Origin: Macrostomum hystrix
Taxonomy: Eukaryota; Animalia; Platyhelminthes
Direction: 5' to 3'
Length of the DNA stretch: 64,000 bases
NCBI GenBank assembly: GCA_950097015.1
Contig: CATNEN010000038.1
Location: 12,400,001 to 12,464,000, forward strand
Shown: positions 964-47,635 of the stretch, one piece after another
Numbering within the stretch: the stretch's first letter is position 1
Layout of the letters: the number at the start of each line of letters is the position of its first letter
Program-made: the position numbers and the translations under genes
Notes under the pieces: model-generated
Told to the model about the DNA's origin: nothing
What the model saw: only the letters and a program-made list of their open reading frames with translations
The model's database searches: none

Positions 964-3900
964 CTATTTCTTAACGCCGGCCTTCTTAGCAGTGCTGTCA
1001 CTCTCCAGGCTGCGATACTCGGCCACCAGCTGCAGTTGCAGGTCCGATGGCACAGGGCAGTAGCGACTGTACTCCATGACGAACTCGCCCTTGCCCTGGG
1101 TGATGCTGCGCAGTTCGCCAATGAACCCGAACATGTGGTTGAGCGGCACTTCGCATTCAATCACGCAGGTGTCGTCCATCAGATCCGAGTGGGTGATGAG
1201 GCCGGTGCGGCGGACTAGAGCTGCCATCACCACCGTCTGGAACTCGACAGGCGTGTTCACCTCCACCAGCATGACCGGCTCAAGCACGTGCCAGGTGCCG
1301 TGGTCTTGCATTTCTCGGACAGCGTGCATTGCGGCCAGCTGGAATGACCAGTCGCTGCTGTCTACCTGTAGGGAGAAGTTTCATAGATCACTGTTTGATA
1401 TGCACCCGTAAATTTACTGACAACAGTGGGTTGCTAGACCACAGATTTGAGAGTGGCATCTACATAATCGATTAAACATCTACAGATGCCAAAGAAACAG
1501 CAGATCTGGAAATCACAATTTTTAAGAACCTTTCTACTTATCTACAGATACGAGAGCGAGATCTACATACCTATGAATGAGATCTACAGACCTCTGAAAG
1601 AGATCTACAGAGCTTTGAATGAGATCTACAGAGCTTTGAATGAGATCTACAGAGCTTTTAATGAGATCTACAGACCTCTGAAAAAGATCTACAGACCTCT
1701 CAAAGGGATATACAGACCTCTGAAAGAAATCTACAAACCTCGGAGAGATATCTACAGACCTCTGAAATAGATCTACAGAGCTTTGAATGAGATCTACAGA
1801 CCTCTGAAAAAGATCTACAGACCTCTCAAAGAGATCTACAGACCACTAAAATAAATCTACAGAGCTCTGAAAGAGATCTACAGACCTCTGAAAGAGATCT
1901 ACAGAGCTCTGAAAGAGATCTACAGAGCTCTGAAAAAGATCTACAGAGCTCTGAATGAGATCTACAGACCACTGAATGTGATCTACAGAGCTCTGAATGA
2001 GATCTACAGAGCTCTGAATTAGATCTACAGAGCTATGAAAGAGATCTACAGAGCTCTGAATTAGATCTACAGAGCTATGAAAGAGATCTACAGAGCTCTG
2101 AAAGAGATCTACAGATCTGAGAGAGATCAGTCTACCTTGTGATGAGCGCCATCCTGCAGCCGGAAGCGCAGACCAACGCACGGATTTCCAGTCAGCAGGC
2201 CCTTCTCGCAGGCCTGCCGGAAGCCTTTTTCAACGGCTGGCACGTAGCTCTTGGGCACATTGGTGCCGACAGTCTCGTCAACGAATTCAAGAGTGGTGCA
2301 CTTCTCCGGAGGCAGGGGCTCGACTACGCCGATGATGCGAGCGTACTGGCCAGCGCCACCCGACTGCTTCTTGTGCAGGTAGTCGAATTTGTAGGGCTCG
2401 GATAGGGTCTCGCGGAAGGCCACCTTAGCAACAGTGGTCACATAAGGAATGATGAATTGAAGGCTAGAGAGTTGGTTTGATAATAGCAATTAATTAAATT
2501 TATACTACTGATATTCTCAATTATATTACTGATCTACTGATTTCGCTACTGAATTCTTTATTACACAACTGATTTACTAAATTGCACTACTGATATTCTG
2601 AATCACACTACTGATATACTCAATTACACTGCTGCTTTCTCAATTATATTACTCATAGCCTCAAAGATACTACTGATATTCTGAATCACACTACTGATAT
2701 ACTCAATTACACTGCTGATTTTCTCAATTATATTACTCATAGCCTCAAAGATACTACTGATATTCTGAATCACACTACTGATATACTCAATTACACTGCT
2801 GCTTTCTCAATTATATTACTCATAGCCTCAAAGATACTACTGATATTCTGAATCACACTACTGATATACTCAATTACACTGCTGATTTTCTCAATTATAT
2901 TACTCATAGCCTCAAAGATACTACTGATATTCTGAATCACACTACTGATATACTCAATTACACTGCTGCTTTCTCAATTATATTACTCATAGCCTCAAAG
3001 ATACTACTGATATTCTGAATCACACTACTGATATTATCAATGATACTACTGACATTCTCAATGACACTACTGATATTCTCAATGATACTACTGATATTCT
3101 CAATGTTACTAATGATATTCTCAATGATACTACTGATATTCTCAATGATACTACTGATATTCTCAATGATACTACTGATATTCTCAATGATACTACTGAT
3201 ATTCTCAAATACTCAACTGCCTTACTTTCGGCTTGCCCAGCACGCAGGGAGCTCTGTACTCCCGTTCGAGTCGCTGGGCGTAGATCTCCAGGTGGAGCTC
3301 GCCCATACCAGAGAGGATGGTCTCGCGGAACTCGGTGTTGAATGACATCCGCAGGGTGGGATCTTCTTTTAGGAAGCGCTGGAGACCCTTGGCAAAGTTC
3401 TCCTGCATGCGGGACTCCTTGGGTCGGATGGACATTGACACCACAGGGTCCGGGACGAAGATGGACTCCATGCTGACGTCGTGCAGGCCGGCTGTGACGA
3501 ATGTGTCGCCAGAGGCGCATTCCACGCCGAAGGTGGCGCAGATGTCGCCAGCGTAGACTTCGTTGACGTCAGCCATCTGGTTAGCGTGCATCTTGACTAG
3601 GCGTTGTACGCGCACTTTGCGACCTGTGCGGGCGTTGCTCATGGTGTCACCGCGTTTCAGTGAGCCCTGAACAATTTGGAGCATTGTGGCTGGCAGTGCT
3701 AGAGGGACACTTGTTCTAAACTAGCTAGGCTTCAGAAAACTCACATAGCTGAGCAAAGATAGAATAGAAGATACGACAGTGCCAGAGTAGAGATGAGACA
3801 CGGAAGAGTGGAGACTGACGATAGAAGAGCTTAAATAAGCGCAAGATGGAACCGGGTAGAGATGCGATCGATGGAGCGTAGAGATACGGGACAGATTAGA

Positions 3901-6900
3901 CAACGGAGAGAAAAGGCAGAGAGAGAAAGAGAGAGAGAGAGAGAAGAAATACAGAAGAAGAAAGAAGACAGTAGAAAGATAAGATAGTGAAATGATGAGA
4001 CAGTTAGAATTAAGGGATGATACAGGGGAGAGAGAAGACAGGGAAGAGATAAGACAGGGAAGAGATAAGACAGGGAAGAGATAAGACAGGGAAGAGATGA
4101 GACAGGGGAGGGATGAGACAGGGGAGGGATGAGTCAGGGGAGAGATAAGGAAGTATAGAGATGACTCAGGGGAGATAAGACAGGGGAGAGATAAGACAAG
4201 GGGAGAGATGAGACCGGCGATAGATAAGACAGGGGAGAGATGAGACAGGGGAGAGATGAGTCAGTGAAGAAATGAGACAGTGTAGGGATAAGTCAGTGAA
4301 GGGATTAAGCTTCAGAGGCTCACCTGATAAACCCGGAAGTAGGTGAGCTGTCCGTAGGCGCCGGCCTCCAGTTTAAATGCCAGGCCGAGAAATGGCAGCC
4401 GATTGGAGCGCTCCGGATTGAGGTGCAGCCGGACTGGCTCTTCGCCTGGGCCGCCGCCCTGCCTATAGGCGTAGTTTTGCACCTCTGTGGGATTGGGCAG
4501 GTAGTCCACCACGCCGTCTAGCAACGGCTGGACGCCTTTATTGCGCAACGCTGTGCCGAGGAACACCGGCGTGAATCGGCGTTGAAGACAGGCTCGCCTG
4601 ATTGCCGCTTTCAGCTGGTCTCGGCTGGGCTGCTGGTCCATCAGCACCAGCTCGCCAAGCTGGTCGTCAACGTTGGCGACGCATTCAACCAGTTCCTGAC
4701 GACGCTCGATTGTCTCGGCGCGGCGCTCTGCTGGTACAGATTCGCGGCGCACCTGAATGGGTGGATATCAGCGGCCAATTATGTACTTTAGAGTTGCCTG
4801 CTACCTGTTCTACCGTGGGATGGCTACCTGTTCTAGTGGGATGGCTACCTGTTCTACCGGTGGGATGGCTACATGTTCTAGTGGGATGGCTACCTGTTCT
4901 ACCGGTGGGATGGCTACCTGTTCTAGTGGGATGGCTACCTGTTCTACCGGTGGGATGGCTACCTGTTCAAGTGGGTTGGCTACCTGTTCTAGGTGGGATG
5001 GCTACCTGTTCAAGTGGGATGGCTACCTGTTCTAGGTGGGATGGCTACCTGTTCTAGGTGGGATGGCTACCTGTTCTAGTGGGATGGCTACCTGTTCAAG
5101 TGGGATGGCTACCTGTTCTAGGTGGGATGGCTACCTGTTCTAGGTGGGATGGCTACCTGTTCTAGGTGGGATGGCTACCTGTTCTAGGTGGGATGGCTAC
5201 CTGTTCTAGGTGGGATGGCTACCTGTTCTAGGTGGGATGGCTACCTGTTCTAGTGGGATGGCTACCTGTTCAAGTGGGATGGCTACCTGTTCTAGGTGGG
5301 ATGGCTACCTGTTCTAGGTGGGATGGCTACCTGTTCTAGGTGGGATGGCTACCTGTTCTAGGTGGGATGGCTACCTGTTCTAGGTGGGATGGCTACCTGT
5401 TCTAGGTGGGATGGCTACCTGTTCAAGTGGGATGGCCACCCAAGTGGGATGGCCACCCAAGTGGGATGGCTACCTGTTCAAGTGGGATGGCCACCCAAGT
5501 GGGATGGCTACTTGTTCAGGTAGTTGGATGGCTACCTGTTTAAGTGGGATGGCTACCTGTTTAAGTGGGATGGCTACCTGTTTAAGTGGGATGGCTACCT
5601 GTTTAAGTGGGATGGCTACCTGTTTAAGTGGGATGGCTACCTGTTTAAGTGGGATGGCTACCTGTTTAAGTGGGATGGCTACCTGTTTAAGTGGGATGGC
5701 TACCTGTTCTTGGTGGGATGGCTACCTGTTCTAAGTGGCCAATTTAAGTTATTTCAAGGCACTTTTTTCTCACAGTGAGTCCGTGAGGCTCATCAAAGTA
5801 CAAAACGCAGTCGTCAATAAGATCGATGACAGCCTCGTGCTGGCTCTGCAGTCCAACTGGCAGCTGGAGGAAGGCGGCGGTGTGCTTCAGCTTGTGGCGG
5901 ATCTGGTGCAGCACCCGGTTAGGATTGGCGCCCTGCCTATCCAGCTTGTTGATGAAAGCCAGGCAGGGCACGCCGTATCGCTGCATCTGGCGATTGACAG
6001 TCAGTGTCTGGGACTGGACGCCGCCAACGGCGCACAGCACTAGGATGGCGCCATCGAGGACGCGAAGGGCGCGCTCCACCTGAGCATTGATTGATTGATT
6101 GATTTGTGTTTATTGATCATTGTTTTATTATGGATGGCTGTTGATAAGAATTATGAGTTTGAGGAGGCCTTTGATAAGAATTATGAGTTTGAGGAGGCCT
6201 TTGATAAGAATTATGAGTTTGAGGAGGCCTTTGATGATAGTTAAAGGTTGAGAAGGCTGCTGATGAGAATTATGAGGTGAGATGGATTTGGGGTGAGGGA
6301 ATGAGTGATGTTTTGCCACAGTAGTTGGATTCACTGCATAGTTATGCCACACTGACTGTGTCGTACCTCAATAGTGAAGTCGACATGGCCAGGTGTATCG
6401 ATGATGTTAATGACGTGGCCGGCCCACTCGGTGTAGGTGGCGGCGGACTGGATGGTGATGCCACGCTGTCGCTCCAGCTCCATGAAGTCCATGACTGCGC
6501 CAACGCCGTCTGTGCCGCGCACTTCGTGCATCTCGCCGACACGTCCGGTGTAAAATAGGATCCGCTCCGTGAGGGTGGTCTTGCCGCTGTCGATGTGGGC
6601 CGAGATGCCAATATTGCGAATCTTTGTCACATCCATCTGGTCCTGTGGTTAAAGTTCGAGCAGAATGTAGAAATATGTTTAGCTAGATTTACCGAGTAGC
6701 TAGATAAGGCATCGGCAGCGGGCCAAAGATAGAACCTAAAATATTGAATAAATATGAGATAGGGGAGAGATGAGACGCTAGATATGAGACAGAGAAGAGA
6801 TGCCAGAGGGAGAAAAGACAGGAGAGATGAGACAGGAGAGATGAGACAGGAGAGATGAGAAGGAGAGACGATACAGAGAGAGATACGGGAGAGATAAGAC

Positions 6901-7396
6901 ACCGGAGAGATAAGACACCGGAGAGATAAGACACCGAAGAGGCGACACGGGAGAGACGAGACACGGGAGAGACGAGACCCGGGAGAGATGAGACACGGGA
7001 GAGACGAGACACGGGAGAGACGAGACACGGGAGAGACGAGACACGGGAGAGACGAGACACGGGAGAGACGAGACACGGGAGAGACGAGACACGGGAGAGA
7101 CGAGACACGGGAGAGAGGAGACCGACGAGAGAAACAGGGGAAAGATAAACAGGCTACTGTAGTTGTCGAATTGGGCAATGGGCCGGATTTGGAAGCTTGG
7201 AGGGCCGCATCTGGTCCGTGGGACAGAGTCATGCCAAAAGAAGTATTTTTTTACAATTGAACTGAATCAATTATCTTACTATGTTAGCTGCAGCTGCAGA
7301 TGATGGCGCTGACAGCTGCCTGTACAGCACAGAGTGGCAGCCAATCAGATGGCTCCGGGATTGACGGGCGCATTGCAATAGCCTGAGCAATCGCAT
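964..7396 (-). CDS. GFM1: Mitochondrial translation elongation factor G1, 7 exons, ~750 aa
   Basis: Exons 7396-7280, 6636(or 6642)-6367, 6079-5774, 4752-4324, 3666-3226, 2423-2136 and 1365-964, all GT-AG and in frame. Motifs: [69 protein letters not shown]. Exon 1 encodes an Arg/Leu/Ser-rich, acid-free mitochondrial presequence ([16 protein letters not shown]...). Confidence 0.96.
1558..2118. repeat. 21-bp minisatellite (gagatctacagagctctgaaa)n in GFM1 intron 6
   Basis: Directly visible tandem array of about 26 units. Confidence 0.95.
2500..3208. repeat. 21-bp minisatellite (tactactgatattctcaatga)n with higher-order structure, GFM1 intron 5
   Basis: Monomer array; 4-monomer blocks start at 2668, 2752, 2835, 2919 and 3002. 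Confidence 0.95.
3900..4290. repeat. Purine-rich 15-16-bp minisatellite (gagacaggggagagat)n, GFM1 intron 4
   Basis: Visible array preceded by (ga)n; same family as 6755-7115 and, inverted, 44996-45545. Confidence 0.9.
4796..5735. repeat. 21-22-bp minisatellite (gtgggatggctacctgttcta[g])n, GFM1 intron 3
   Basis: Visible array of about 40 units in homogeneous sub-blocks (tctag, tcaa and ttaa variants). Confidence 0.95.
6141..6235. repeat. 30-bp tandem repeat x3, GFM1 intron 2
   Basis: ttgataagaattatgagtttgaggaggcct repeated exactly three times. Confidence 0.95.
6755..7115. repeat. 16-bp minisatellite (gagacacgggagagac)n, GFM1 intron 1
   Basis: Visible array, with CpG-containing units in the homogeneous part. 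Confidence 0.93.
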
Positions 7397-11290: not shown

Positions 11291-11947
11291 GTGTCACTTC
11301 TGTATATCAATTTAACTATCTTTGGTACCCAGCGAAAAAGAAACAGTGAAATCAAACTTTGGTTTAGAATTACTCGAGTAAAGTGCATCTGTTAGTTGCA
11401 CTTTTGATGTAATGATTAAATTCGTGAATTCGAGTCTGCTAAAATTCAGGACATGTGCAGGCCACCCATTCTGCAGTTTCTCGTCTCAGCTGAAAATCAT
11501 TTTTTCAGTGATGATGTGATCTGCCATCTGGCCGGAGTTTGATTTCATAAAAAATCGAATCGCGTCAACACGCAGCCGTCTTATAGCTTGCTCCAATTCT
11601 GACAGCAGCTGTCCCCACATTCCCATTCACTACCACTCGACTGCTGCTTGATAATTGTGATTCCGCGTCGCTCGTTCTTGACCGCTAGATTCAATATCCG
11701 GGCACTCCAGACTCCCAAATCACGTCTTACCTTCTCTGTCTACCCTTACCGCCGCCACGCCAGGGATCGCTGCGAATTCCCTAAACGAACTGCCGCTTTT
11801 GATTGGTCGGGAACAGTAAAAGGAGGCATCTGCACGATAGCTTATTTGTACTTATAAAAGCGCAATCCTCTGACAACCATTTATCATACCGCAACCGATT
11901 TGGGGAACAATAGAAGATCTGGTTTCCATGAACGCGCATTCCACAAA

Positions 11948-14900
11948 ATGTTTAGCAACAACCTGACGGTCAATCCCTGCCTGGTGCACCTGATGCAGCT
12001 ACGGCGCCACCCGGTAAACGCTCTCTACCTGTACTATCAGTGTCGCAATGAGACCAATTACACCAGCGCCTTCACCGAGCTGCGCACCTCCTGGGAGCGC
12101 CTGCTGGACCGTGAGCTGCCTTGGCTGGTCGGCCTGCTGCTGACCTCCGGCTTCCTCGCCCTGCTGGGCGCCATGGGCAACGGCCTGGTAATCGTCCGCG
12201 CCTGTCGTCGCAACGGACGGCGGCTCGGCGGTCGCGAAAGGTGCCCACGGCGACGCCAGCTGTTCGTGCTGAACCTGGCCCTGTCCGACTTTGTCCTGTG
12301 CACAGTGACGCAGCCTGTGAATGCCCTGCGGCTGCTGCAGGACCACGTCAGCTGGCCACTGGGTACTGCTGTCTGCAAGCTGGCAAATTGGCTGACTGGC
12401 CTCAACCTGTTTGTCTCCACCTTCTCCATAACTGCAATCGCTCTTGATCGGTTCAGAGTGAGTGCAAACTAATATCAATAATAATATTGATGATTGCAGG
12501 AGGACTGCGGGCAATCCACATCATTCAGGTGACACTGGACCTGCAGCCAGTGAGGATTCGATTCCGCCACAAACACACAACACACACTCATATCGTACCC
12601 AGGCAAACACTCACACAGGTGTGTACATCTGCCCTGACTTTCTCATCGTTACGCAGTGTACACTCCAAGCCTTCTCTCCACGGCTGCATCCTAAGTTAAT
12701 GTGGCCTCGCTGCGGAATCGAGCTTAGGGACCTTGGCATGAGAGGCAAGCGCGTTAACCGCTCGGCCACTGAACCTCCCCCGAGTGACTGTTTAAACCGC
12801 ATGTGTTAGAATTCTAGCAAGAAAATTGGAATCTGTTTCAACTTGTACGAGCGGCCCAGGCGGCCCAACAAGGCTAGGTGGAATTCTCTCTTTCACGTGA
12901 GTATATTTACTATAGTCTTATTTTTAGCGCTAACTGGGTTGTCCAGTTGATGGATGCCGGGATACAGGATAAAGGATATTTTTACAACCGGGCAGCTACC
13001 GCATACTGGGACAGTCATGCTTTGCAAACAAGCCGGCACATCCTCTGCCGACTAGAAGGGAAAATATACGGGTCAAGCTGCCATAAAAAATCCCATCTTA
13101 TTAACCTGCAGTAGCGGCCGATGTTTACGGCCAAAAAGGGATAAAAACTGATCCCTTTTCTGACCGCACAGCCTGTGTGTGACAGCTCGCGCCTCACCCT
13201 AACAATCTCTCTCCCCTTTTTCCCATTCTTCCCCCCGTGCGGTGTGAATTCGGTAGCCTCAGCTAGCAAACCATTCCAAAACTGATAAGCCGACTTCAGC
13301 CCAGCTTTATTGGGCTGGGGATTAATCTCGCGCTTCTGTGTTGAAGCCACATCACTGTGAAAACCAATTCAGTTCAATGCAATCAAGCCTATAGAGCGTG
13401 AGGCTGTGGTATAAATTTTAGCTCAACACGCAGCGATCGTCTTCAGGTGTCGATTAATTATCCTCACAGCAGTTAGGGTCAGGCCTTGAGTGGGAAAGAA
13501 ACTCGGGAATTAATGAGGCTTCCAAGACGTATTTCTATGCCAATCCTAGAAATTTCTAGATAAATGCTTTATTTTCTCAAGCAAGTAGGCATTATGATAA
13601 TAATTGCAGACGGGCAGCGGGCAATGGCAAGGAATTTGGTGACTCCTAGACACACTCACACGGATACCGTACGCAGACATACGCTTGCACAGGGTGTGTA
13701 GCTCGTACATCTGCCCTTAGACTTCCTCGTAGTCAGGCTGTGTACACTTATATTGTGCCCAGTAGCGCCCTCAAGGGCCCGTAAATTGCACAGCAAGCCC
13801 AAAATAAATGTCGCCTCGCCGCGGAATCGAGCTCACGGACCTTGGCGCGAGAGGCAAACGCCCTAACCGCTCTGCCACCCCTCCCCCAGTAAGTAGGCCA
13901 TAGTGTTATTTAGACGCCCTGTGAGTTGTGTTTTTATGCACTAATTTCAGGTCAAAACACAAAACTCAGCCTGTGTTTTCATCTTTGTTGAAGTTTGACT
14001 GCATTTCTAGTCAATTTGCATCCGTCCATGGCCCAGGCTGCAGGAAAAACATTTCTCGGTTTGTTTTTCACCTTTTCTACTCGTGATTAAAAAGAATGCC
14101 AAAGGATTCAGTAGCTGGCTTCCCAAGTTCAACAAGATTTACGGTTTATAATTGCCCCCTCCCTGTCTACCTGTCTCGCGCGGAAACCAAATTTTCTGCA
14201 AAACTGCTCAAAGTAAAGAAATGATATTTTCCAGGACCACTGCTGACCTTTGCAGTTGATTAGAAAGGAGAGAAATTTATTCAATGCAACTCTACGCAGT
14301 CATTACTAATGATGTATAAGACTGAATTACCGAGTTTATGTGACAAAATCATATATCAAAAAGTCTGCAAATGATTGTCAATCAGGACACTTCTGTCAGA
14401 GACGATTTATCCTTACGTAATTTCCTCGTGCTTGGCGGCCAGGCCTACACATTCCACGGTCTAAACAGCGGTACACAAGCTTTTAGAAGCGCATTCAAAT
14501 CGCTGGGGCTGTGTAGCTACAGCTACTACGGACTAGGGGCCACCACCAAAACTTTTTATTCCCCGGAAAATAATCTGAAGCTTCGAACTCCAGACCTCTC
14601 GGCTCACCACTAGACCAGACCGCCTACGAACTCCCTTTCTCGCAATCGCCCACAGACAATCGTGCGCCCGGACCAGCAGAGCTTCGGCAGCAGCGGCAGT
14701 GGCACCAGCCGTAAGCAGCCCCTGTCCGTGCCGGTCATCTGGCTGGCCGCGGCCGGCCTCGCCTCGCCGCTGCTTTGGTTCGCCAGCGTCGCCGAGAACA
14801 AAGCGCTGGCCACTAGCCAGGCCCAGCAGCAGCTGCAGTGGCACCAGCTGGATCATCGGATGCTGCTCTGCGGCGAGGCCGTTAGCGATCGCGCTGGTCG

Positions 14901-15345
14901 AGCCGCGAAGCTAGCCTACAGTGTGGCAACGCTGGTGTTGCAGTACCTGATCCCCCTCACCACGGTGGTCGCTGCCTACTGTCGCATTCACGCCCGACTC
15001 CGCCTGAAGCTGCGCTACCGCCGGGAGAGCAGCCAGCAGTCGTCGGCCTACCAGATGCAGCGCCTGATGCTCGAGCAGAAACGCAATCGGCGAAGCAACT
15101 GCCGCCTGACGGCTATCGCGAGCTTCTTCGCTCTGGCCTGGCTGCCGTTGGCGTTGTTCAACATCGCAAATGACCTCCAGCTGTGGCTGCCCTCGACTCG
15201 TTTCATCAGCCGCCACCAGGTGCCAATCCAGATTGTGCAAAGCGCCTCCCTGCTGCTGATTTTGGCCTCGGCCTGCGCTAATCCGCTACTTTACGGACTT
15301 CTCAGCGTGAGGCAGTGGTCGCTGCGGCGCAACAACAGCCAGCAA

Positions 15346-15397
<52 letters not shown>

Positions 15398-16126
15398 CTC
15401 CCGAGAGGTCAGCGTAATATTAATATCCATCTTATTTTGCGAAGCACTAACATAAGCACAAATACAAAACACAAAAGTGCTCATACCGTACAGAAGCACA
15501 CAACTCACACGGGCTGTACATCTTACTCAATGTGTACAATTGCATGAAAAGTCCACGAGCCTTCTCTCCGCGGCTGGCCCTAAGTGAAATTGCAGAAAGA
15601 TTCGACTAAAACTTTATTAGTAATAAACTATGAGTAATTGTGTTGCTTCCTATCTTGGTAACCGTATCAATTAAGGACTGCTGCAGTAATCCTACTAGCT
15701 GGCTATAAATAGCTAACTACTTGGCAATTAAACTAGCCATTTAGGTCATAGAACCATAGAGCTAGCCTCTTACTATTTCGCATCCTCAGAGGTCCTGCAG
15801 GGGCCACTGGATTAAGCACTGCTCGAACTCAACAACCAGTTCAGCCGCCGTCGCCGCACTCACGTCCTACAATCTGCTGTTCCGTGACCCAATCCAACGG
15901 CTTCCGTAGTACAGGTGCCACACGAGGGGCGAGGGGCTATTTTCAACGACGGTCAACTCTACGGAGCCGTTCTGACGAAGTATTCATCGAGGATGAAGAG
16001 CATGACGACGGAGTAGTTGAGACTGCTGCAATAAACATGCTGCCGCTGAGGAAGTCATCGCTTCACCTCGCCTGGTACCATCCAGACGTCACACTGTGGA
16101 TAGATGATGATTATGACGAATGCTGA
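11948..16126 (+). CDS. Rhodopsin-like (class A) neuropeptide GPCR, NPY/NPF/PrRP-receptor-like, 3 exons, ~532 aa
   Basis: Exons 11948-12457, 14656-15407 and 15790-16126, GT-AG and frame-consistent. TM1 GN, TM2 NLALSD, ECL1 WPLG..CK, TM3 VSTFSITAIALDRF, TM5 LQYLIPL, TM6 FALAWLP, TM7 ANPLLYG. The LQYxxP and VSTFSI segments are typical of NPY/NPF-type receptors. Exon 3 is less certain than exons 1-2. Confidence 0.88.
12490..12785 (-). mobile_element. SINE family B copy in GPCR intron 1
   Basis: Reverse complement of the family B head (ggttcagtggccgagcggttaacgcgcttgcctctc...ctcgattccgc) through to the tail. Confidence 0.8.
13600..13890 (-). mobile_element. SINE family B copy in GPCR intron 1
   Basis: cgcggaatcgagctcacggaccttggcgcgagaggcaaacgccctaaccgctctgccacc matches the other B copies. 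Confidence 0.78.
14430..14625 (-). mobile_element. tRNA-derived SINE, family C (degenerate)
   Basis: Minus strand reads ggcggtctggtctagtggtgag...gaggtctggagttcgaa (A and B boxes); tcgaactccagacctctc recurs at ~25808. Confidence 0.5.
15340..15396 (+). repeat. Coding CAG/CAA microsatellite, polyQ(19), in the GPCR C-tail
   Basis: cag caa caa followed by 16 uninterrupted cag codons. Confidence 0.95.
15470..15590 (-). mobile_element. SINE family B fragment, GPCR intron 2
   Basis: gtacatct...tgtacaattgcatga...agccttctctccgcggctg core. Confidence 0.6.
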
Positions 16127-26141: not shown

Positions 26142-26614
26142 TCAGCCGGTCCTCCTGCTCAGCGACTCCTGGCCAGTAGCCAGGCGCTGCAAGGCTTGCT
26201 GAATCTCCACCATGCCGTTGACTTGGGCCTGCATCTCGTTGCCCATGGACTGCAGCACTTTGCCTAGGTGCTTGAGACCATTGCTAGTCGACATGCCCTG
26301 CACCTGGTTGGCCTGGTCGCGCAGATAGCTTAAGTCGGTGCGGAGGGGCCGGAAGCTGGGCGTCCACTTCTCCTGGAGGTCGAGGCTCGACTGTGGAAGG
26401 CACCGATTCGTTATAAGGTCAATGATTGGCGAGTGTAAATACCACTGGAGCAACTCAACCCACATTTACTTACATCGTCAAGTTCTTCATTCACGGCCTC
26501 CAGGTCGCTAGGCTCGGAGTTCAGAATTGAATCTTCGGCGACTTGACTGCCGGCACTGACCGCTCCTAGGAGCAGCAGAAACAGAGCAAGGGACTGGAGC
26601 GGGCTGGCTTGCAT
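26142..26614 (-). CDS. Small secreted prepro-protein A (signal peptide, acidic propiece, helical domain), 2 exons, 129 aa, unknown family
   Basis: Exon 1 26614-26474 (MQASPLQSLALFLLLLGAVSA + acidic GSQVAEDSILNSEPSDLEAVNEELDD), 83-nt phase-0 intron gtaagt...ccacag, exon 2 26390-26142 (SSLDLQEKWTPSFRPL...LSRRTG*). GC3-rich codons. Confidence 0.82.
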
Positions 26615-26831
26615 GCTGTGGCTTAGCGTCTATGGCCGTGACTGCGCAATGAGACTTTGTTCTCATGAAAAAGACGGATTTGCAGCGACACAAGGTGAAA
26701 TAAACTGTTTTGACTGTTAGGCGTAACTCAAATCCAGGACTCGATCAGCTAATAAATAGAGATCACTAAGCCATGGCTCCGCTAAAGTGTTCTCAAACAC
26801 TACCTGATTAGCTTAGAGTCACGAGCCAGCA
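26615..26831. promoter_or_regulatory. Putative bidirectional promoter between the two secreted-protein genes
   Basis: Only 217 bp separate two divergent ATGs; AT-rich TATA-like taataaata at ~26750. Inferred from geometry only. Confidence 0.55.
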
Positions 26832-27678
26832 ATGAAACTGAGACAACCGCAGCTGCTGGCCGTGCTGCTGCTCTTAGTAGCAGCATGCGTCGTCCACCTG
26901 GGCGGGGCGGCTGTTGCTGAGCCGTCCGCCGTGCACGCTGAGCAGTCACTGGTCCCGGAGTCGTCTCAAGTTGAGGAGAACCTTCTCGAGTCGGCTGCCA
27001 GCGATCCGGAGGAAGAGAATGACTATTTAGAGGCCATGGAGATGTTCGAGAATGAGGCAGCCGCTGTGAGTTGTTTTTTTTCTGGCAATGGTTTCTGTCC
27101 CGCATATAGGAAGTAAGCAAGTCTGATCAGGCAGCAATGCTTTTACAGGTCGCATGCATTTGCATCTCCATTGTTTGCAGAATGGCCTGACCGCCGAGGA
27201 GATCCAGCAGAAGTGGCGGTTCCGCGGTCCCCGGTTCAGTCTGCCGAGAATCCGCCTGCCGAGGATCCGCCTGCCGAGGATCCGCCTGCCGAGGATCCGC
27301 CTGCCGAGGATCCGCCTGCCCAGGTTCCGCCTGCCGAGGTTCCGCCTGCGCCTGCCGAAAATTCGGGTCCGGCTTGATCTACGAAAGCTTGCCAGGAATT
27401 TGAACGTCTTTCGACACCTGAAGAAATTCCGCGATATGGTTAAGAATCTAATCAACAGACCCAATGAGGACTCGATGCTCAAGCCGTACATGCTAGAGTT
27501 GGCCATGGCCGTGTCGGAGATGATTCTCAACCTTGAAGCTAGCTCGAAGCAAATCATTGAGGCGCAGCAGATGGTGCGCGAATTGGCCAAAAACTATGAA
27601 ATCCTACGGAGTGCAGTTCAGATGGGACAGCCTTTTGTGGCGGGGGGCATTGCGTGTGGATTGGACAGAATTTACTAA
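26832..27678 (+). CDS. Secreted prepro-protein B with Arg/Pro-rich (LPRIR)n cationic repeat, 2 exons, 243 aa; candidate antimicrobial peptide precursor
   Basis: Exon 1 26832-27065 (signal [29 protein letters not shown] + Glu-rich propiece), 115-nt phase-0 intron gtgagt...ttgcag, exon 2 27181-27678 ([20 protein letters not shown](LPRIR)5(LPRFR)2LRLPKIRVR... then a helical domain). Confidence 0.85.
27241..27345 (+). repeat. Coding 15-bp tandem repeat x7 (ctgccgaggatccgc)
   Basis: Seven in-frame units encoding LPRIR x5 and LPRFR x2. Confidence 0.95.
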
Positions 27679-30689: not shown

Positions 30690-33600
30690 TCACTGGTCCC
30701 ATCAGTCCCTTCAGCACAAGCTCAGTGCGTGACCACCTGGCCGTACCACTTGGCGGTGCGCGAAGTCTGGCACTGCACCGCAGTTCAGCGCCGTTTTCCG
30801 TAGCAGCCTCCGGACCATCAGTCAGCGCCTGGTCACCCGCTTGCGGCTGCGGCTGCCGAGGTGGCTCGGCCTCAGGCACCGTTGCTCGTGCGCCTTCAGT
30901 CGCGGCCAAAGGCAGGCAGACGCTCGTGTGCCACCTCGAACCGTCCTCTAGCATGACGATCGTCGGGCTGATGATGTCGCTGACACGCAGAGGCTGTGAC
31001 ATGTGGCTCTGTAGTTTGCCTCGCATTCTCGGTGATCGGACTTGCACCATGTCGCCCACTCTGAATTGGCGCGGCGGTTTCCGAGTCCTGTTAAGCCGCT
31101 CGAACTGTCACCGCTGCTTGGCCTTGATTTGGTCCTCCAGCGGGTGCTCCTTGGTCGGTGGCCTCGGCTGCAGTGTCCACAGCGGCGTGGTGATCTTGCG
31201 CCCGAGCATCAGCTCCGCTGGAGTCACTCCCGTCATCGCGTGGGGTGTCGACCGGTACGCCCAGAGGATTGACTGCACTGCCTCCAGAAACGAGTAGCCG
31301 TCCCGCAGGTGACTCTTCAGGCCCTCTTTGACAACTCGGTTCAGGCGCTCAACTCCAGAGTTGCCTTGCGGATGGTAGAACGGGGTCTGCCGATGTGCGA
31401 TCCCATGTGCCTTCAGGAAGTCCCTGAACTCCTGGGACACAAACTGCGGTCCGCCGTCCGTCGTGATCACTCTCGGGATGCCCCAGCGAGAGAACAGCGC
31501 CTTGAGACTCCCGATGATGGTCGTTGAAGTCGCAGAGGACAAACAGATCAGCTCTGGCCACTTTGAATGTAGGTCGTGCACTCCGAGGATGAATCGGCAG
31601 TTCTGCGGGGCGCCCTCGTGCAGCTCCCCGAACAGGTCGATCTGCAGCTCAGTCCACGGCTCCTTTGGCCACTTGGTCGCAGTCAGGATCGTCCGATGCG
31701 GCTTGAAGCTCTTCTCTCTCATGACGCACGCAGAACAGTTGCCGACGAACCTTTCGATGTCGCTGTCCATTTTTGGCCACCACACAGTGTCCCGGCACTG
31801 ATGCTTGGTCCTGCTGACTCCCCGGTGACCTTGGTGCGCCAAGTCGAGTACTCGTTGACGAAGACTTTCTGGCACCACAGCGCGAGCACCCATCGCCAGG
31901 CACCTGCCGTTGCTCCAGACAGATAGCTCGTTTCTGACCTTCCAGTAGGGCAGCAGGCGCTCGTCGAGTCTCCGCTTGTCCGGCCATACAGCTACAGTGA
32001 AGTCAACGACAGGTGCGAGCAGCTCGTCCGATGCCGTTGCCTCGGCGAGTTCCTCCTCGGTGACCACGCTCAGCGCCTCGGCTAGCAGTACTCGCTGCAC
32101 CTTCAAGTCGTCAGTAGCATCATCTTCCGTCGGCCTTTCCGTGCCGTCGCAGCGGGACAGGAAGTCGGGCACAATGTTCTTTGCACCTGGGACGTACTTG
32201 ACAGTGAAGTCATAGCTAAGTAGACGATCCGCCCAACGGTGCAGTCTGAGTGGCCGGTGCCCGCTTCCCGATGCTGACAGCAGGGTGGTGAGAGCCTGAT
32301 GGTCCGTATGGAGCTCGAAGCGTCGACCGTAGAGGAAGAAGTTCCAGCGTTCGCAGGCGAAGATGCAGGCCAAAGCCTCACGCTCACTGGCTGAGTAGCG
32401 GCGCTCTGTCTCACTCAGCGTCCGGCTGGCGAAAGCTACAGGCCGCCACCGATTGGCCGCGTCCTACTGAAGGAGAACCGCACCGAGAGCTGTTGCCGAG
32501 CTGTCGCAGCTGATGATGATCGGCTGGTCTGGATCAAAGAACTTCAGGCAGGGCGGGTTGCTTACACCTGCCTTCAGCTGCTCGAATGCCTTCTGGCACT
32601 CGCTCGTCCATTGCCACGGCTCCTCCTTCCTGAGCAGCTTCATGAGTGGCTCCGCCGTACTCGAGAGGTTGGGAATGAAGTTTCCAAAGTACTTCACAAC
32701 GCCCAGGAATGCAGACACCTCCTTGGTGTTCGTCGGCGGCTGCACCTTCTTGATGGCTTGCACGTGTGATCGCAGTGGTCTGACTCCGGATGCACTCAGC
32801 TCGTAGCCCAGGAAGTCAATTTTTTCCTGCCTCCAAGCGCACTTGGCCGGGTTGATGGTCACGTTGTGCGTCAACAACGCTTGCAACACCATGAGCAGCT
32901 GCTTATCGTGCTCATCCTTGGAAGTTGCATGCACCACGATGTCATCCATGAAGTGCACTGCGCCTCTGATGCCGCCGAGTATCTTGGCGAGGACCTTCTG
33001 GAATGCGGCTGGTGCGCTACAGAGACCGAAGCAGACTCTCCGGTAGCGGTACAGGCCTCGCTCAGTCACGAATGTTGTTAGATTCCTGCAGTCTTCAGCC
33101 AGATCCAGCTGCAGGTAGGATGAGTTGAGGTCCAGTTTCGAGAAGACCCGCGAACTTTCAAACTCGGCTGAGAGCTCCTCGAAGGTTGGCAGCGGGTACC
33201 TGTCCGGTATGATGCTCTTGTTCGGACCTCTCAGGTCGTTGCAGATTCGAATCGCGCTGTTGGCCTTCGGAACCACAACCAGGTTCGAAACCCAGTCCGA
33301 AGAGTCGACCTCCTCAATGATGCCTTGTTGCAGCAGCTTGTCGATCTCCTTATGCACCGCGTCACGCAGACTAAGCGGCACTCTGCGCAGCTGCTCAGCA
33401 GTCGGCTGCACCGCCGGGTTCACTCGCGGCCTGTGCTGAAATCCCTTGATGTGCCCGAGTCCTCTGGTCAGCTGGTCAAACCGGCTCGGGATCCAGTCAG
33501 GCAGGGCTCTGTCACCGGCCGTCTGCACCCGTTCACCGTCTGCCGTAACGATCTGCAGTCCCAGCTGATCCATGAGATCGCAGCCCAGGATGTCGGAGCC

Positions 33601-34813
33601 CGTCTTGACCACGCTGATGTTGCAGTAGGGCACGACCTTTTCCTTGAGCTGCACGGACACCAGAACGTCGCCGAGCACTTGGATTTTGCTGCCGTTGAAC
33701 GCAACCAGCTTCCGAGATGACGCGTGCAGCGGCACCTTGGACAAGAGCCTCCCGTAGGTTTCCTTAGTGATGATGCACACCCGGGAGCCGGAATCCACGA
33801 GCAGCTTGACAGGCCGTCCGTTCAGCAGCACCTCACAGTACTTGCTGGCTGCCACGGCCGTTTTCACTGTGCAGACAGAGTAGTCGTCGTCAAGCTGTCG
33901 CACCTGGCCTCCACTCCTGCAGACCCTGGCGAAATGCCCCAGCTTCCCGCAGGCCTTGCATTCCTTGCCTTTTGCCGGGCAGGTCTGTCCACGCTGATGC
34001 GCTCCCTTGCCGCAGTTGACACAGTTCCGGCCGGAGTCGGAGACCGGCCTTGGTGTCTCCTGCCGCTTTGCTGTCGCCTTGCCTTTCCAGCTATCAGGCC
34101 GTCGACTGTTGACGTTCTGGACCCCCTGTGCGATACCGGAGTCTGCGCGGTTGCCACCCTTTAAGGCCTGGGCTTCGAGCAATCCGGTCTCCAGCCGTTC
34201 GGCGAGCTGAACGGCGGTTTCCAGGGTCAGCTTCGGCTCCATCAACAGTCGCTCACGGATGTGGTTGCTGAGCACCTTCTCGATGAGCTGATCCCTCAGC
34301 ATCTCTTCCTGGAAAGTCTTGAAGTCGCAGTTGGCTGCCAGGCTCCGCAGTGCGGCGATGAAGTCGCTGATTTTCTCGCCAGGCCGCTGAGCTCTCTGCC
34401 GGAACCGGTGCCGTTCGGCCACGACGTTGACCTTCGGCCCGAAATGCTTGTCCAGCAGCTGCAGAGTACCTGTCTCATAATTACACCACGGTTTTCGGCT
34501 TTTCTCTTTCGTCCACCGGCTGAATCGACATGAAGATGTTCTGACCCTCTGCACCCAGGCAGTGGATGAGCAGGGCCTGTCGTCTCGGCTCGGGCAGGTC
34601 GATGGCTCCCGATGCTAGCAGGTAGTTGCTGAACATCGCCTTCCACCGAGTCCAGTCGATCAGCGGCGGTCCAGCAGCTGACAGAAACGGCTGCGGCGGC
34701 GAGATATTGACACTCATTCTGCTGGCACAATCTCTGCTTGGTGGTAGGGCTGCACTTTGCTGGGATTCTCTATGTGAATCGCCCAAGCCATCTGCACCCT
34801 CTGTGTCGCTCAT
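30690..34813 (-). pseudogene. Disrupted gag-pol polyprotein of the Gypsy element
   Basis: Twin knuckles CVNCGKGAH..C / CKACGKLGHFARVC, protease LVDSGS, RT FMDD, RNase H DSS..ERRYSASEREALA, integrase H..H..C..C, DLFG, TDGGPQF and ERLNR. Frameshift near 34490; in-frame TAG at 32464-32466; TGA at 31108-31110. Confidence 0.92.
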
Positions 34814-40296: not shown

Positions 40297-42577
40297 GACT
40301 GATGGTAAGCAGTGCTTACCAAGGCCTAATTTTACTTCCTGCCGGCTTGAGTAGATAGAATTCTATGGTTAAATTGATATTATCGGTTCCTGCCTGCAGT
40401 GGTAAGCACAGCTTACCGTGAATATTCTAGATTTTTTTCTGACAAGCATAAATTTTAATTTGTACATTCTTAATTATGTGTTGTTTGTACATCTCCTTTA
40501 TAGCTTTTAGTTCAAACATTCTATTTTATTCAAGAAGGCTCTGATAAATTTGAATTCCAATATCTTAACTTTCTCGTAGTATTGTAAAAATAACTAAAGA
40601 ACAAAGAAGAGCATCGAAACAGCCGATACATCTGTCCAATCTAACTTACCAGCGCATACAGAGGGTACGACTGGTACACTATGCAGAAACTATAACTAGC
40701 AAAACTAGAATAAATAAATAATAGTCATTAACAAATTTAAGCTAAAGACAAGAGGCAAAACTGAAAACTTAAGTCAGTTTGAGTGTTAAGCTGGTCCATT
40801 CTGTCGATACTTCAACGCTGCGAATGCCAACGTTGGAAGCAATCGAACAAACAAAGTCCCGGGCATCCTGGACATCGGCTGCAGAAATAAATTGTGCGCC
40901 GGGACCTGGCAGAACTGTAGCAAATTCTGCACCTTTTCGTAGGTCTGGGCTGGGCAGGACGACCTGGGATTTTCTCCGGAAAATGCTGCTCAACGACTGC
41001 AACTGAGCGCAGCATGGAAGCCGGTCGCTTCCTGCCATTTCCAGTTCGCTCTACTAACTCGCGGATGCTGGCTTCGAGATATTTGATGAAGGTATTCTGG
41101 CCACCACACTTGGAGTACAGAACCCAAGCGTTGCGCACCATTTGAAGGCACATATGCAAGCCCAGCTTGTGGAACCATTTTGTTGTTTTTCTGCCGGCGT
41201 CATAAGGCTGCAGTCTAGCTTGTCCACACCACCCATGCAGCGATTGTAAGTTAAGACACTGCGGCTCTTCTGCACTGCCACATGTTGTCCAGCTCGATTG
41301 ATCTTGACTTTCTCGGCCTTTGACGCAACGTCCTTCGTGTCCAGCAAATACACGGTCTTGACTCCACTCTGCTTCCTCTCGACAGCCTTCACAATTAGAA
41401 CTCGTCCCTTCCTCACGAAAGCTACATTATTCGGAACCACCACAGCCTGCCGAAGCTGAGCCGGAACTCCTCGGTCTGGCCTCACGGTGCCCGTCAGGAA
41501 CGTTGAATGGTCAATAAGGAACTGGGATAACCTGTATGATGTAAACCAGGTGTCGGTAAATATTCTGTACCCTTGGTCCAGAATGTCATTGGCCAGCTCA
41601 GCTACGATTCGCTCGCTGAGAGAAAGATTTACACAGTCCTGTGTGGAGCCGAACTTCCGATTTTCTTCTGGAGTTGAGTGCACTATGAAATTGAAGAGAT
41701 AAGCAGACTTGGACTCACACAGACAGTACATCTTCATTCCGGACTTGGCCCGCTTTGTTGGAATGTACTGTTTAAAACGAAGTCGCCCCTTAAACAGTAT
41801 CAAGGACTCGTCAATGCTCACTTCACACTCAGGCCTGTAGTTGTTCTTGCAATAAGCTTGCAGCATATTCATAAATGGACGAATCTTGAGTAGTGGATCT
41901 GCGCTTGCTTCTTCCCTGCTGTCGTAGAAGCGCAGAAATGTCAGCAGCTGCTTGAATCTATCGCGAGCTAACGCCTCGGGCTTCTGAAAGTATGGCATGC
42001 AGTGAAATTCATCTGTGCTCCAGTAGTCATGTAGCTCGGACTTTTTGTTCAGGCCCATGTTCTTCAGCCGCTTCGCCATCTGCGAACTCCTGTCCTTCCT
42101 CGCCTTCAGGCTCTTCCATGATTGGAGGATCGCCATTCAGTGCGTCTTCGATGCCAACCTCCTCACCAGGCTCCTCGTCTATTGTTAAGTAGGAGTCGAG
42201 GCTCACTTCACTGTCTGAGGTCATGTATTCGATCCCAGAGAGAGAAGCCATGTACTGCAGGTTTTCAGTGAGTACGCTCGTACTGAGAAATTTAGTGAGA
42301 AAAGACTAACAAACAAGATGGTCAGAATATTATTGTAAGAAAGCTTGTCCTACTGTAAAGGGGACTTGCTGCGCACAGATTTCTATGGTAAGCAGCGCAT
42401 ACCAAGCAGGCAGCAAGTGAGACTGCTTTACTGGCTAAAGGCAGTAGTGCTGCTCATTTCCTTCCCGTCTAGTGCATCAGTTTAAGCCATGCTTGATTAG
42501 TAAGCCTAGCCGGCAGGAATGGGAGTGACATGCTATGCCAGAAAATATCTATGGTAAGCACTGCTTACCAAGCAGTC
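40297..42577 (-). mobile_element. piggyBac-like (PGBD4-type) DNA transposon, defective
   Basis: Transposase remnant flanked by imperfect inverted ends gactga-tggtaagcagtgcttacca / tggtaagcactgcttacca-agcagtc, plus internal copies of the palindrome. No TTAA at these ends. Confidence 0.8.
40812..42251 (-). pseudogene. piggyBac transposase (DDE_Tnp_1_7-type with C-terminal Cys-rich domain), frameshifted and internally deleted
   Basis: Acidic N-terminus, MGL...YWST, IDESLILFKGRLRFKQYIPTK, DTWFTS, GTVR, YNRCMGGVDKLD, and CRD RCRIC...YFCSRC..GLC..CFQRWH. Frame breaks near 42060 and 41205. Confidence 0.9.
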
Positions 42578-44995: not shown

Positions 44996-45545
44996 ACTGT
45001 CTCATCTCTCCCCTTTCTTATCTCTCCCCTGTCTCATCTCTCCCGTCTCATCTCTCAACTGTCTAACCTCTCCCGTGTCTCATCTCTCCCGTCTTATCTC
45101 TCAACTGTCTCACCTCTCCCCAGTCTCATCTCTCCCATGGCCCTGTCCAATCTCTCCCGTGTCTCAGCTCTCCCCTGTCTCACCTCTCCCGTGTCTCATC
45201 TCTCCCCTGTCTCATCTCTCCCGTGTCTTATCTCTCCCCTGTCTCACCTCTCCCCTGTCTCATCTCTCCCGTGTCTTATCTCTCCCCTGTCTCACCTCTC
45301 CCCTGTCTCATCTCTCCCCTGTCTTATCTCTCCCCTGTCTCACCTCTCCCGTGTGTCACCTCTCCCCTGCCTCACCTCTCCCGTCTCACCTCTCCCGTGT
45401 CTCATCTCTCCCGTTTCTCATCTCTCCCCAGTCTTATCTCTCCCCTGTCTCATCTCTCCCCTGTCTCACCTCTCCCCTATCTTATCTCTCCAGTCTCATC
45501 TCTCCCACGGCCCTGTCTCATCTCTCCCCTGTCTCGTATCTGCCC
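44996..45545. repeat. 16-bp pyrimidine-rich minisatellite (tctcatctctcccctg)n
   Basis: Visible array; reverse complement of the repeat family in GFM1 introns 1 and 4. Confidence 0.93.
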
Positions 45546-46370
45546 TGGGCCTCGGGCTTTGATATTTGCTGTATAAATACCATCAAAGCCATCAAACTCA
45601 TTTTAATTTGACCAACGGTTTTACAGTAGCTTGGCAATTCCAAAGTCCAATTCCACTGGAATATGCATTCAAACCTAACAACCTATAGTCACAGTGGGTC
45701 ACAATTTTGGTTCGAACATGAAGTCTATATTGACACATACCATTGCCATTTTGAACACGGACTATTTTTTATTTAAAATTTTCTTTTAGCGCCACACCCT
45801 GAAATTTCTTCGAGATTGACTTAATCTCACCTAATCTAAAGCTTCTAATCTAAAGCCTTAGCCTTAGCAACTAGCAATGTAAGTCGTTGACAATTCTAGA
45901 AATTAGCGCAATTATCCCACAGGCCGCCAAAGTCAAACCCCGAGTCGCACATTTTGGCACGTTGACGAAATTTGACCAATTTTTGGTGAGGCGAAAAATG
46001 TATGTTAATTGCGTAACACAGCCGAAACTGACACATATGGATAATAATAAGAGCTAGATTTAAGAAATTTGCATATTATTATCGGTAAGCCTCAATGTTG
46101 ATGATGCAACTTGCCCAAGGCACTATAGTCCTATTGTTACCTGCGACTGTGTTGCGTAACTTAACAATGAACAATGAACTTTGCCCCCATTTGTAAATTG
46201 CAAGGAGGGGACGGTACAATGGGTTCTTTGTACGAACGAATTCGAATTCAAGAACGAATTCGATCTATTAAATTGGCTTTGTCAGAAATAAAGATAAACA
46301 ATTTTATGATTAGGTGTCGAAATTTGCTCTCTACCCCTTTCTCACCCTTTCCCCTTCCCATTCAGTTTTC

Positions 46371-46746
46371 CCCTTCTCAAACTGTCTATTCCCTTCTCAC
46401 ACTGTCTTATCACTTCTCAAAAGGTCTATTCCCTTCTCACACTGTCTCTTCCCTTCTCAAACTGTCTATTCCCTTCTCACACTGTCTCTTCCCTTCTCAA
46501 ACTGTCTCTCCCCTTCTCAAACTGTCTCTTCCGTTCTCAAACTGTCTCTTCCGTTCTCAAACTGTCTCTTCCGTTCTCAAACTGTCTCTCCCCTTCTCAA
46601 ACTGTCTCTTCCCTTCTCAAACTGTCTCTCCCCTTCTCACATTGTCTCTTCCCTTCTCAAACTGTCTCTCCCCTTCTCAAACTGTCTCTTCCCTTCTCAA
46701 ACTGTCTCTCCCCTTCTCAAACTGTCTCTGCCCTTCTCAAACTCTC
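46371..46746. repeat. 20-bp minisatellite (cccttctcaaactgtctctt)n
   Basis: About 18 visible units. Confidence 0.95.
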
Positions 46747-47046
46747 TTAAGTGTTTCTTTTGCTCTCCAGCCCAAAGCCAGCATTCACCTGCTAACAAGA
46801 AGGCTAGGTGTATCGGAGGAAATCTCACCTAGCTTACTCATATCTTCTCAGGCTTGAGCCTGGGGCTTTTTTGCTCCCGGAAGCATCAAAGGGCCTTCTT
46901 AGCTGCTGCCTTACTTAGTCGGCAATGTGAGTTCGCATTTATGCCTGACTGGGTCGCATCATATCGTAAATGGAGTGTTTTCGAAATGAAAATCAAGTAA
47001 TTAAAGATATAGCTTCGAATATTTAAACCAGTATTTGTATTGTATC

Positions 47047-47247
47047 TCCCTAACCCCTTCTCAGATTCTTATCCTAATCCCTTCTCAGGTTCTTATCCTA
47101 ATCCCTTCTCAGGTTCTTTTCCTAATCCCTTCTCAGGTTCTTTTCCTAATCCCTTGTCAGATTTTCTCCCTAATCTCTTCTCACATTCACTCTCCAATCC
47201 ATTCTCAGATTCTCTCCCTAATCCCTTCTCAGATTCTTATCCTAATC
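47047..47247. repeat. 24-bp minisatellite (cctaatcccttctcaggttcttat)n
   Basis: About 8 visible units; shares the cccttctca core with the 20-bp array. Confidence 0.9.
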
Positions 47248-47635
47248 AGGCGGATAGCTCAGTCAGTAAGGTGTCGGACTCTGGATCAGATGGTCCTGGG
47301 TTCGTCTCCCGACCTAGTCTAGAACTATTCGTGCAGCCTTTGGCAAGCTGCTTTGCCCTGATGTGCTCAGCTCAGTCTACTCAGCTGCAAATGAGTACCG
47401 AAATTTCGTCGGGTAGTAATAATTCCGGCTGGCGTGGAATAAAGCAGTTCTGTGCGGCAATTCTGTGGGGTTTGGATGCTGCCGATATGTTTGGAAAAAT
47501 AAATTTCATTGCTTACACGCGGCTGTCAAACTGGTGTCCGAGAGTGCCGGGGAGTACATTAGGTGTGCAGTCCCCACCTGCTAGTGTGCTTGACACACAA
47601 CACCTGCACTGGCCCTTGGGTCTAGTGTCAAATTA
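47248..47635 (+). mobile_element. tRNA-derived SINE with a family-A-related central domain
   Basis: ggcggatagctcagtcagtaagg...ggtcctgggttcgtctccc head; cctttggcaagctgc...ctcagtctactcagctgcaaatgagtacc central domain; AT-rich tail. Confidence 0.7.

Follow-up and report, generated by a model that had tools for sequence, protein, structure and literature searches.

A single-copy Macrostomum hystrix gene for a predicted secreted protein with a Trp-started, arginine-rich pentad array that may act at anionic surfaces

In the charge-neutralised precursors of defensins, of the Hydra arminins and of eosinophil pro-MBP, an anionic propiece of roughly matching charge stands before a toxic or sticky polycation, and the genes for antimicrobial peptides are usually multi-copy, with variable mature peptides. 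Proline-rich antimicrobial peptides (PrAMPs) form a second class of cationic effectors, in which proline makes up roughly a quarter or more of the residues. The classical PrAMPs are reported to enter through SbmA and to bind the ribosome via proline-arginine repeat cores around a YL motif; Bac7 carries a cathelin-like pro-region, and the class, which is defined by recurring Pro/Arg motifs, arose several times (PMC4797290). Arg/Pro-rich, heparin-binding peptides derived from PRELP also kill bacteria, and a terminal W or F tag raises their killing (PMC3029338, PMC2667214). Here we compare these systems with a gene found in a 64,000-nucleotide (nt) stretch of the genome of the flatworm Macrostomum hystrix (contig CATNEN010000038.1, positions 12,400,001 to 12,464,000; hereafter the window). 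It encodes a secreted-type protein of ~243 amino acids (aa), in which a signal peptide and an acidic pro-region are followed by a polycationic array of hydrophobic-Pro-Arg-hydrophobic-Arg pentads and a helical tail. Our leading reading, to which we give a probability of about 40%, is that the product is a charge-masked secreted pro-protein whose Trp-capped, Arg-rich array binds anionic surfaces, most likely in host defence by direct action on surfaces or membranes.

Judged from its sequence features, this is a real two-exon gene with a secreted product (coordinates in Table 1). Exon 1 comprises 78 codons that encode the signal peptide and then an acidic stretch; the signal-peptide cut was set by eye with the -3/-1 rule, and the arrangement at this point, HLG.AVA/AEP (slash at the cut), is also present in the homologues from Macrostomum lignano. 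A preliminary description of this DNA had reported an acidic propiece and, directly after EEIQQK, the cationic segment. The acidic piece stands, but EEIQQK begins exon 2 and does not close one continuous open reading frame (ORF), and the propiece lies mostly in exon 1, upstream of a 115-nt intron. Counted over both exons, the acidic stretch past the signal peptide holds 17 Asp/Glu and 1 Lys, and the charge blocks along the chain are ~-16 for the acidic region, +26 for the module and ~-1 for the tail, bearing out the described order of an acidic propiece before a cationic piece, now with a signal peptide in front. The module opens with W-RFRGPRFS, continues through seven hydrophobic-Pro-Arg-hydrophobic-Arg pentads and a degenerate Arg-rich tail, and closes with NVFRHLKK, which is invariant. 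Within the 73-residue segment from the Trp to the last Arg there are 24 Arg, 4 Lys, 1 Asp and 9 Pro, and the original hand counts (~24 Arg and 4 Lys, one Asp, ~17 Asp/Glu in the propiece) matched exactly on recount. The spliced model was searched and folded exon by exon. A glycosylphosphatidylinositol anchor on the C-terminal tail was considered and rejected: the hydrophobic stretch there is too short, and the protein ends in DRIY.

The gene has close counterparts in a second species of the genus. A phmmer search with the non-repeat C-terminal 110 aa returned one true relative, the M. lignano 'hypothetical protein BOX15_Mlig026096g1' (PAA74498.1, E 5e-8), and when PAA74498.1 served as the query, a second copy in M. 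lignano emerged, PAA74545.1 (BOX15_Mlig030454g1). Both exons align in colinear order with the M. lignano proteins (BLASTP E 4e-10, exon 2; E 2e-4, exon 1), the exon 1 match to PAA74498.1 being a gapped alignment with 46% identity over 50 aa. Because the GenBank gene models of M. lignano derive from RNA-seq transcripts, with ORFs called by TransDecoder (PMC5730564), the gene is transcribed in that species, and on the evidence of these alignments the M. hystrix gene is orthologous to the two transcribed M. lignano genes. All three proteins share the signal peptide, the acidic region, QQKW, RFRFR, (LPRIR)n and the helical tail. The M. lignano proteins differ in having 8 pentads (plus 2 LRRIR variants) and 10 pentads, compared with 7 in M. 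hystrix, and in lacking a 19-aa C-terminal extension of the M. hystrix protein. A three-protein alignment contains 75 invariant columns; QQKW is invariant in it, and so is HLKK, which falls exactly at the boundary between module and helix. The cationic module is the best conserved part of the protein, with 79-80% identity to the M. lignano proteins, a figure that is somewhat inflated by the alignment of repeats, although the unit itself is the same in both species; the repeat core reaches 91-94% and the helical tail 30-38%. Both M. lignano proteins are unnamed and without a published study, and no mention of the pentad motif or of the M. lignano gene identifiers was found in the literature searched, which included texts and supplements of Macrostomum papers.

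Within M. hystrix, the gene is single copy. The genome searched comprised 220,453,370 bases in 42 contigs; no second copy of exon 1 or of the C-terminal domain was found in these 220 Mb, and a back-translated PRIR-x-PRIR pattern occurred there at this locus only. Exon 2 also gave 234 six-frame genome matches, which were rejected as paralogues, all of them being translated unrelated satellites (for example GIRRL, MGRIR and RETERQ). Pfam returned nothing above threshold for either exon or for a head-to-head neighbour gene, Rfam had no match in the whole 64-kb window, and exon 2 had no match in a word-index protein search.

At the DNA level the array is a 15-bp minisatellite with the unit CTGCCGAGGATCCGC, which Tandem Repeats Finder recovered with 95% matches, no indels and a score of 190. 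Its translation in the frame of the long ORF (frame 1 of 27205-27435) is (LPRIR)5(LPRFR)2, confirming the in-frame repeat that had been noticed by eye. Of the seven units, four share one sequence, a fifth differs by a synonymous AGA, and in the remaining two an A>T change replaces Ile with Phe. None of the three forward frames of this repeat is closed by a stop, and the reverse strand is open as well. Frame +2 (27171-27377, plus strand) gives a Pro-rich acidic peptide, (PPAED)n, and the reverse strand gives (GRRIL)n; the homologues back neither of these. Other minisatellites in the window are likewise open in several frames and on both strands (3020-3200, 4750-5060, 6627-7232, 45075-45611, 46174-46857, 47040-47250 and 59968-60827), and they yield long repeat 'ORFs', for example TDLTEVSEHT. 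Since many repeats are open in multiple frames, a repeat ORF in the M. hystrix genome needs outside support. For this locus, the M. lignano homologues, which are transcript-based gene models, use the LPRIR frame; LPRIR is therefore the coding frame by this comparison, and the PPAED frame, which the preliminary description had kept as an alternative, is excluded.

The multiplicity of open frames also bears on the possibility that the ORF encodes a non-functional product, as a by-product of a stop-free minisatellite. The openness of the repeat in three forward frames and on the reverse strand, in a window full of repeat ORFs, is what such a by-product would look like. We consider it extremely improbable, as the two M. 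lignano proteins, which derive from transcripts, conserve the signal peptide, the intron phase, both exons and the LPRIR frame; with its frame and its pentad both kept there, the repeat exceeds what chance would give. The occurrence of the same pentad in differing unit numbers in M. lignano also supports the earlier proposal that the array grew by in-frame addition of 15-bp units. A further suggestion, that charge and length are tunable by copy number, holds in part: compared across species, the arrays have 7, 8 and 10 units, which supports tuning as a fact of variation alone. A neuropeptide or FMRFamide-like polyprotein was rejected as an interpretation of the repeats, because Gly does not precede the basic sites and the units are not separated by dibasic sites.

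The layout of charge suggests how a pro-protein of this kind might operate. We propose that the acidic region masks the array's charge during passage through the secretory pathway, in the manner of charge-neutralised precursors of antimicrobial peptides and granule proteins, and that the array would be exposed after secretion, possibly via cuts near QQK/W (slash at the propiece/module junction) and at HLKK. Once exposed, it would bind anionic surfaces, whether microbial envelopes, acidic membranes or polyanions, with the N-terminal Trp and the Phe, Ile and Leu side chains acting as interfacial anchors, the Arg side chains providing charge, and copy number setting the length and charge of the array. 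Host defence would then be exerted by direct action on the surface or membrane, and a Bac7-type ribosome mechanism is not likely.

Compared with the precursors of defensins, arminins and MBP, the protein is alike in having a signal peptide and an anionic, charge-offsetting propiece ahead of the polycation, a layout that is the same in M. lignano. It is unlike them in its propiece/module junction, where QQK/W offers no dibasic or known convertase site, in its third, helical domain, in its single-copy gene and in the conservation of its cationic part. The two sides of the module also differ from each other, the N-terminal side presenting a conserved single Lys (QQK/W) and the C-terminal side an invariant KK (HLKK). 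As HLKK is invariant exactly at the boundary, the cationic piece could be released. It had been stated that the repeats are not released at dibasic sites; there are indeed none between the units, but the view that no dibasic site could release the peptide is weakened by HLKK at the module/helix boundary.

The preliminary description had placed the peptide alongside Bac5, Bac7 and PR-39, which raises the alternative of a classical PrAMP that would enter bacteria by SbmA-type uptake and block the ribosomal exit tunnel. The protein resembles these peptides in its regular Pro-Arg dipeptides, one per five residues, in charge that is borne mainly by Arg in a recurring pattern with Pro, in its pro-protein with signal peptide and in repeats built by tandem duplication, and the PrAMP class itself has more than one origin (PMC4797290). 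However, Pro accounts for 12% of the 73-residue segment (9/73) and for 20% within the pentads, and there is no PRP, PP or YL core. The cationic part is internal to the protein instead of C-terminal and, at ~70 aa and a charge of +26, greatly exceeds transporter substrates in size. Pfam detected neither a cathelin domain nor any other known pro-domain, and a PDB sequence search, with a library of chains of at least 20 residues, matched no PrAMP chain. Membership in the classical PrAMPs is therefore not supported by the sequence comparison, nor is the kinship or convergence with Bac5, Bac7 and PR-39 that had been suggested, and we regard exit-tunnel blocking as very unlikely.

PRELP offers a closer analogy to work with: it is a secreted protein with an Arg/Pro-rich mature N-terminus, through which a folded domain is anchored to polyanions. 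The W/F end-tagged PRELP peptides offer a second point of likeness, in that a terminal Trp or Phe raises binding and killing, and the natural module described here starts with W-RFR. In contrast, those tags are artificial and C-terminal, and PRELP itself lacks a pentad repeat, an acidic pro-region and a native W cap.

Structure prediction from a single sequence with AlphaFold2 (AF2) placed helices at residues 67-91, 101-116, 122-147 and 151-162 of exon 2, with a predicted local distance difference test score (pLDDT) of 55, which is low confidence and leaves the model too poor for a fold search. Hydrophobic residues occupy 0.71-1.0 of the a/d positions in the C-terminal tail, which we predict, at low confidence, to be an amphipathic helical domain. 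The array itself is predicted to be unstructured. Its hydrophobic moment is near zero at 100 degrees (helix), 120 degrees (polyproline II, PPII) and 160-180 degrees (regular strand), and peaks at 144 degrees (a 2.5-residue period); two faces would form only if the strand register is reset at each Pro. The sole solved chain that matches the array by sequence is apolipoprotein B-100 (residues ~2701-2747, E 0.006-0.009). It is alike in its five-residue Pro period and in hydrophobic residues at positions 1 and 4, and unlike in that its variable positions are acidic or neutral instead of Arg, the score being borderline and of low complexity. We take this weak match as a lead on conformation and as no evidence of kinship.

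Arrays of the same kind also occur outside the genus. A Trp-started (hydrophobic-Pro-Arg-hydrophobic-Arg)n array was found in six uncharacterised non-Macrostomum proteins of secreted type, four from JGI (P0004, P0006, P0007 and P0008), one from Logan (P0009) and one from ENA (P0005). The four JGI proteins, which we call the P0004 family, consist of a signal peptide, a long acidic region, DP(L)W RRWRFR, (xPRIR)n, a Pro-rich linker and a ~130-aa Cys-rich helical domain. In P0009 the array directly follows a hydrophobic leader at the N-terminus, possibly a signal peptide that is truncated, and precedes a Cys-rich piece and an EF-hand region of acidic character. In P0005 a signal peptide leads into W PRIRLRLPRIR..., after which comes a transthyretin-like TTR-52 domain of nematode type. 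Taken together with the Macrostomum proteins, the array starts with Trp, has at least three pentads, and is located either N-terminally in the mature protein or after an acidic region in every case (9/9). Acidic residues are limited to at most one per 36-89 residues of array in 9/9 proteins, with none in the six non-Macrostomum arrays (36-76 aa) and a single one in the arrays of the M. hystrix protein and of P0001, while the net charge of the acidic regions, -16 to -26, partly offsets array charges of +26 to ~+33. In the non-Macrostomum families the charge of the acidic region scales with the module, at -17 to -26 against ~+30. Members of the group share, by descent or by convergence, no more than the repeat and the W-RRFRFR start; their flanking domains bear no relation to one another, the module preceding four different C-terminal domains across the nine proteins, and the group is a grouping proposed here with no curated family behind it. 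When the P0004-family profile was run against the M. hystrix genome, its best match was the locus described here (E 1.2e-17), and this profile search found no counterpart there of the Cys-rich domain.

The Cys-rich domain of the P0004 family is all-helical, with an invariant C-x2-H-x2-C-x2-C (AF2 pLDDT 74-88, fair), and Foldseek found nothing for it. The sole pointer to a fold, a VIA-align match below threshold (Z 6.3) to the fungal phospholipase A2 chain 4aup_B, is not relied on. The residue following the invariant His is not Asp. A metagenome scan for the module gave mainly high-GC noise plus one transcript-like contig, L021 (Ga0307384_10095759), with a secreted acidic ORF at 9-581 followed, in another frame, by (VPRIR)n and an acidic tail at 804-1148. 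This contig has no Trp at the start of its array and might be related to the module as a frameshifted or a two-ORF form.

The recurrence of one module before four different C-terminal domains, always at the mature N-terminus, brings in the alternative of an uncleaved targeting tether. Here the array would dock the helical domain, as the true effector, on anionic membranes or matrix, in the way that the PRELP end docks its leucine-rich repeat domain, and signalling, reproduction or cell-surface binding would be possible roles. The P0004, P0005 and P0009 proteins have no dibasic site after the module, and because of this the module probably stays attached as a tether in the non-Macrostomum families. 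The helical tail is moreover kept across Macrostomum species. That tail is nevertheless the least conserved part of the protein (30-38% identity), and the invariant KK at the Macrostomum boundary suggests a separation of module and tail, such that a tether appears rather unlikely for the M. hystrix protein. More broadly, and tentatively, the array may be an undescribed portable module common to flatworms, a nematode-type transthyretin-like protein and further eukaryotes, one that directs secreted effectors onto anionic membranes or is itself microbicidal. A charge-matched acidic pro-region would hold it inactive, and minisatellite copy number would set its charge dose.

Several observations weigh against a role of the charge-masked pro-protein in host defence. 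We found no multigene family of the type in which the prepro part is conserved and the mature peptide varies. There is one gene copy, and within it conservation is highest in the cationic part (80% for the module vs 30-46% elsewhere), the reverse of the usual antimicrobial-peptide pattern. The N-terminal boundary of the module is a single Lys, with no dibasic site, and a dibasic site after the module is lacking in the P0004, P0005 and P0009 proteins. In addition, the array is non-amphipathic as a helix, as a PPII helix and as a regular strand.

A single-copy gene and a predicted unstructured array would suit another alternative, a structural or packaging polycation. The array would then bind secreted polyanions such as mucus, glycosaminoglycan-like polymers or acidic partners and, together with the acidic block of its own chain, condense or coacervate a gland secretion (rhabdite, mucus, adhesive or egg-shell), with no killing role. 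Consistent with this, opposite charge blocks are joined in one chain, the strong conservation of the exact pentad suggests a defined partner, and the acidic head-to-head neighbour, which has the same build, could be such a partner. Yet the protein is small and has none of the Gly/Tyr/Cys/Lys signatures usual in glues, and elsewhere the module sits on TTR-like, EF-hand and Cys-rich globular domains, unlike matrix material. We consider the structural polycation possible, if somewhat doubtful.

The neighbour lies on the minus strand and shares with the pentad-repeat gene a 217-bp spacer, inside which the candidate TATA-like element TAATAAATAGAG is located ~70 nt 5' of the ATG. The neighbour encodes a signal peptide, an acidic piece, LQEKW and a helical tail, without the Arg repeat. 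BLASTP between the two genes gave no match. The neighbour does show a weak colinear BLASTP match to PAA74498.1 (E 0.001), together with a match of LQEKW to LQQKW, and hhalign against the M. lignano proteins gave E 0.0033 with a probability of 10%. Mirrored short DNA matches between the two genes fall on the signal-peptide codons and on the QxKW codons. Because of the weak M. lignano matches and the common gene structure, the neighbour may be a diverged paralogue that never gained the repeat, or lost it; alternatively, it may be a partner. Besides the features in Table 1, the window contains mitochondrial elongation factor G (EF-G) exons and an EF-hand exon.

Table 1. Coordinates of the pentad-repeat gene, its neighbour and other features of the window
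Feature	Position	Strand	Description	Basis
Two-exon gene	26832-27065, 27181-27678	+	Exon 1 starts with the ATG at 26832	Translation, splice signals, colinear M. lignano protein
Signal peptide	26832-26915	+	28 aa, MKLR..., Leu-rich core, AVA at predicted cut	Translation
Acidic pro-region, exon 1 portion	26916-27065	+	50 aa, net ~-15	Translation, charge count
Intron	27066-27180	+	115 nt, phase 0, GT-AG; donor GTGAGT at 27066, acceptor TTTGCAG ending at 27180	Colinear match of both flanking exons to one M. lignano protein
End of acidic region	27181-27213	+	Conserved QQK directly before Trp	Exon-2 translation
Polycationic module	27214-27426	+	W...HLKK, 71 aa, net +26	Composition, three-protein alignment
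15-bp minisatellite	27241-27349	+	Unit CTGCCGAGGATCCGC, 7.3 copies	Tandem Repeats Finder
C-terminal helical domain (predicted)	27427-27678	+	83 aa, net ~-1, plus TAA stop	Translation, AF2
Candidate TATA-like element	26750-26761	+	AT-rich, TAATAAATAGAG	Sequence reading
Neighbour gene	26142-26614	-	Exon 1 26614-26474, 83-nt phase-0 intron, exon 2 26390-26142	Sequence reading
Rhodopsin-family G-protein-coupled receptor exons	11900-12472, 14662-15417	+	Two exons, the second ending in ~20 Gln	
Ty3/gypsy-type long terminal repeat retrotransposon	31108-34554	-	Two long, largely intact-looking ORFs (protease, reverse transcriptase, RNase H, integrase)	
piggyBac-type transposase	41054-42136	-	360-aa ORF	Domain DDE_Tnp_1_7, E 6e-52
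Single-exon ORF	56505-57611	-	368 aa, Cys/Trp-rich, hydrophobic C-terminus	No Pfam match

Should binding or killing of microbes be borne out, the module would represent a new sequence class of animal host-defence element, Arg-rich, Pro-punctuated, Trp-capped and set by repeat number, in the Platyhelminthes, to our knowledge a phylum without characterised antimicrobial peptides. The natural variants with 7, 8 and 10 units would then give a ready structure-activity series. The presence of the module before unrelated domains would define a new anionic-surface-targeting domain for protein annotation. If instead the role is structural, the gene would provide a compact natural protein with a built-in charge-neutralising block. 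Either way, two 'hypothetical proteins' of M. lignano become a testable gene, in a species for which RNA interference, in situ hybridisation and transgenesis exist.

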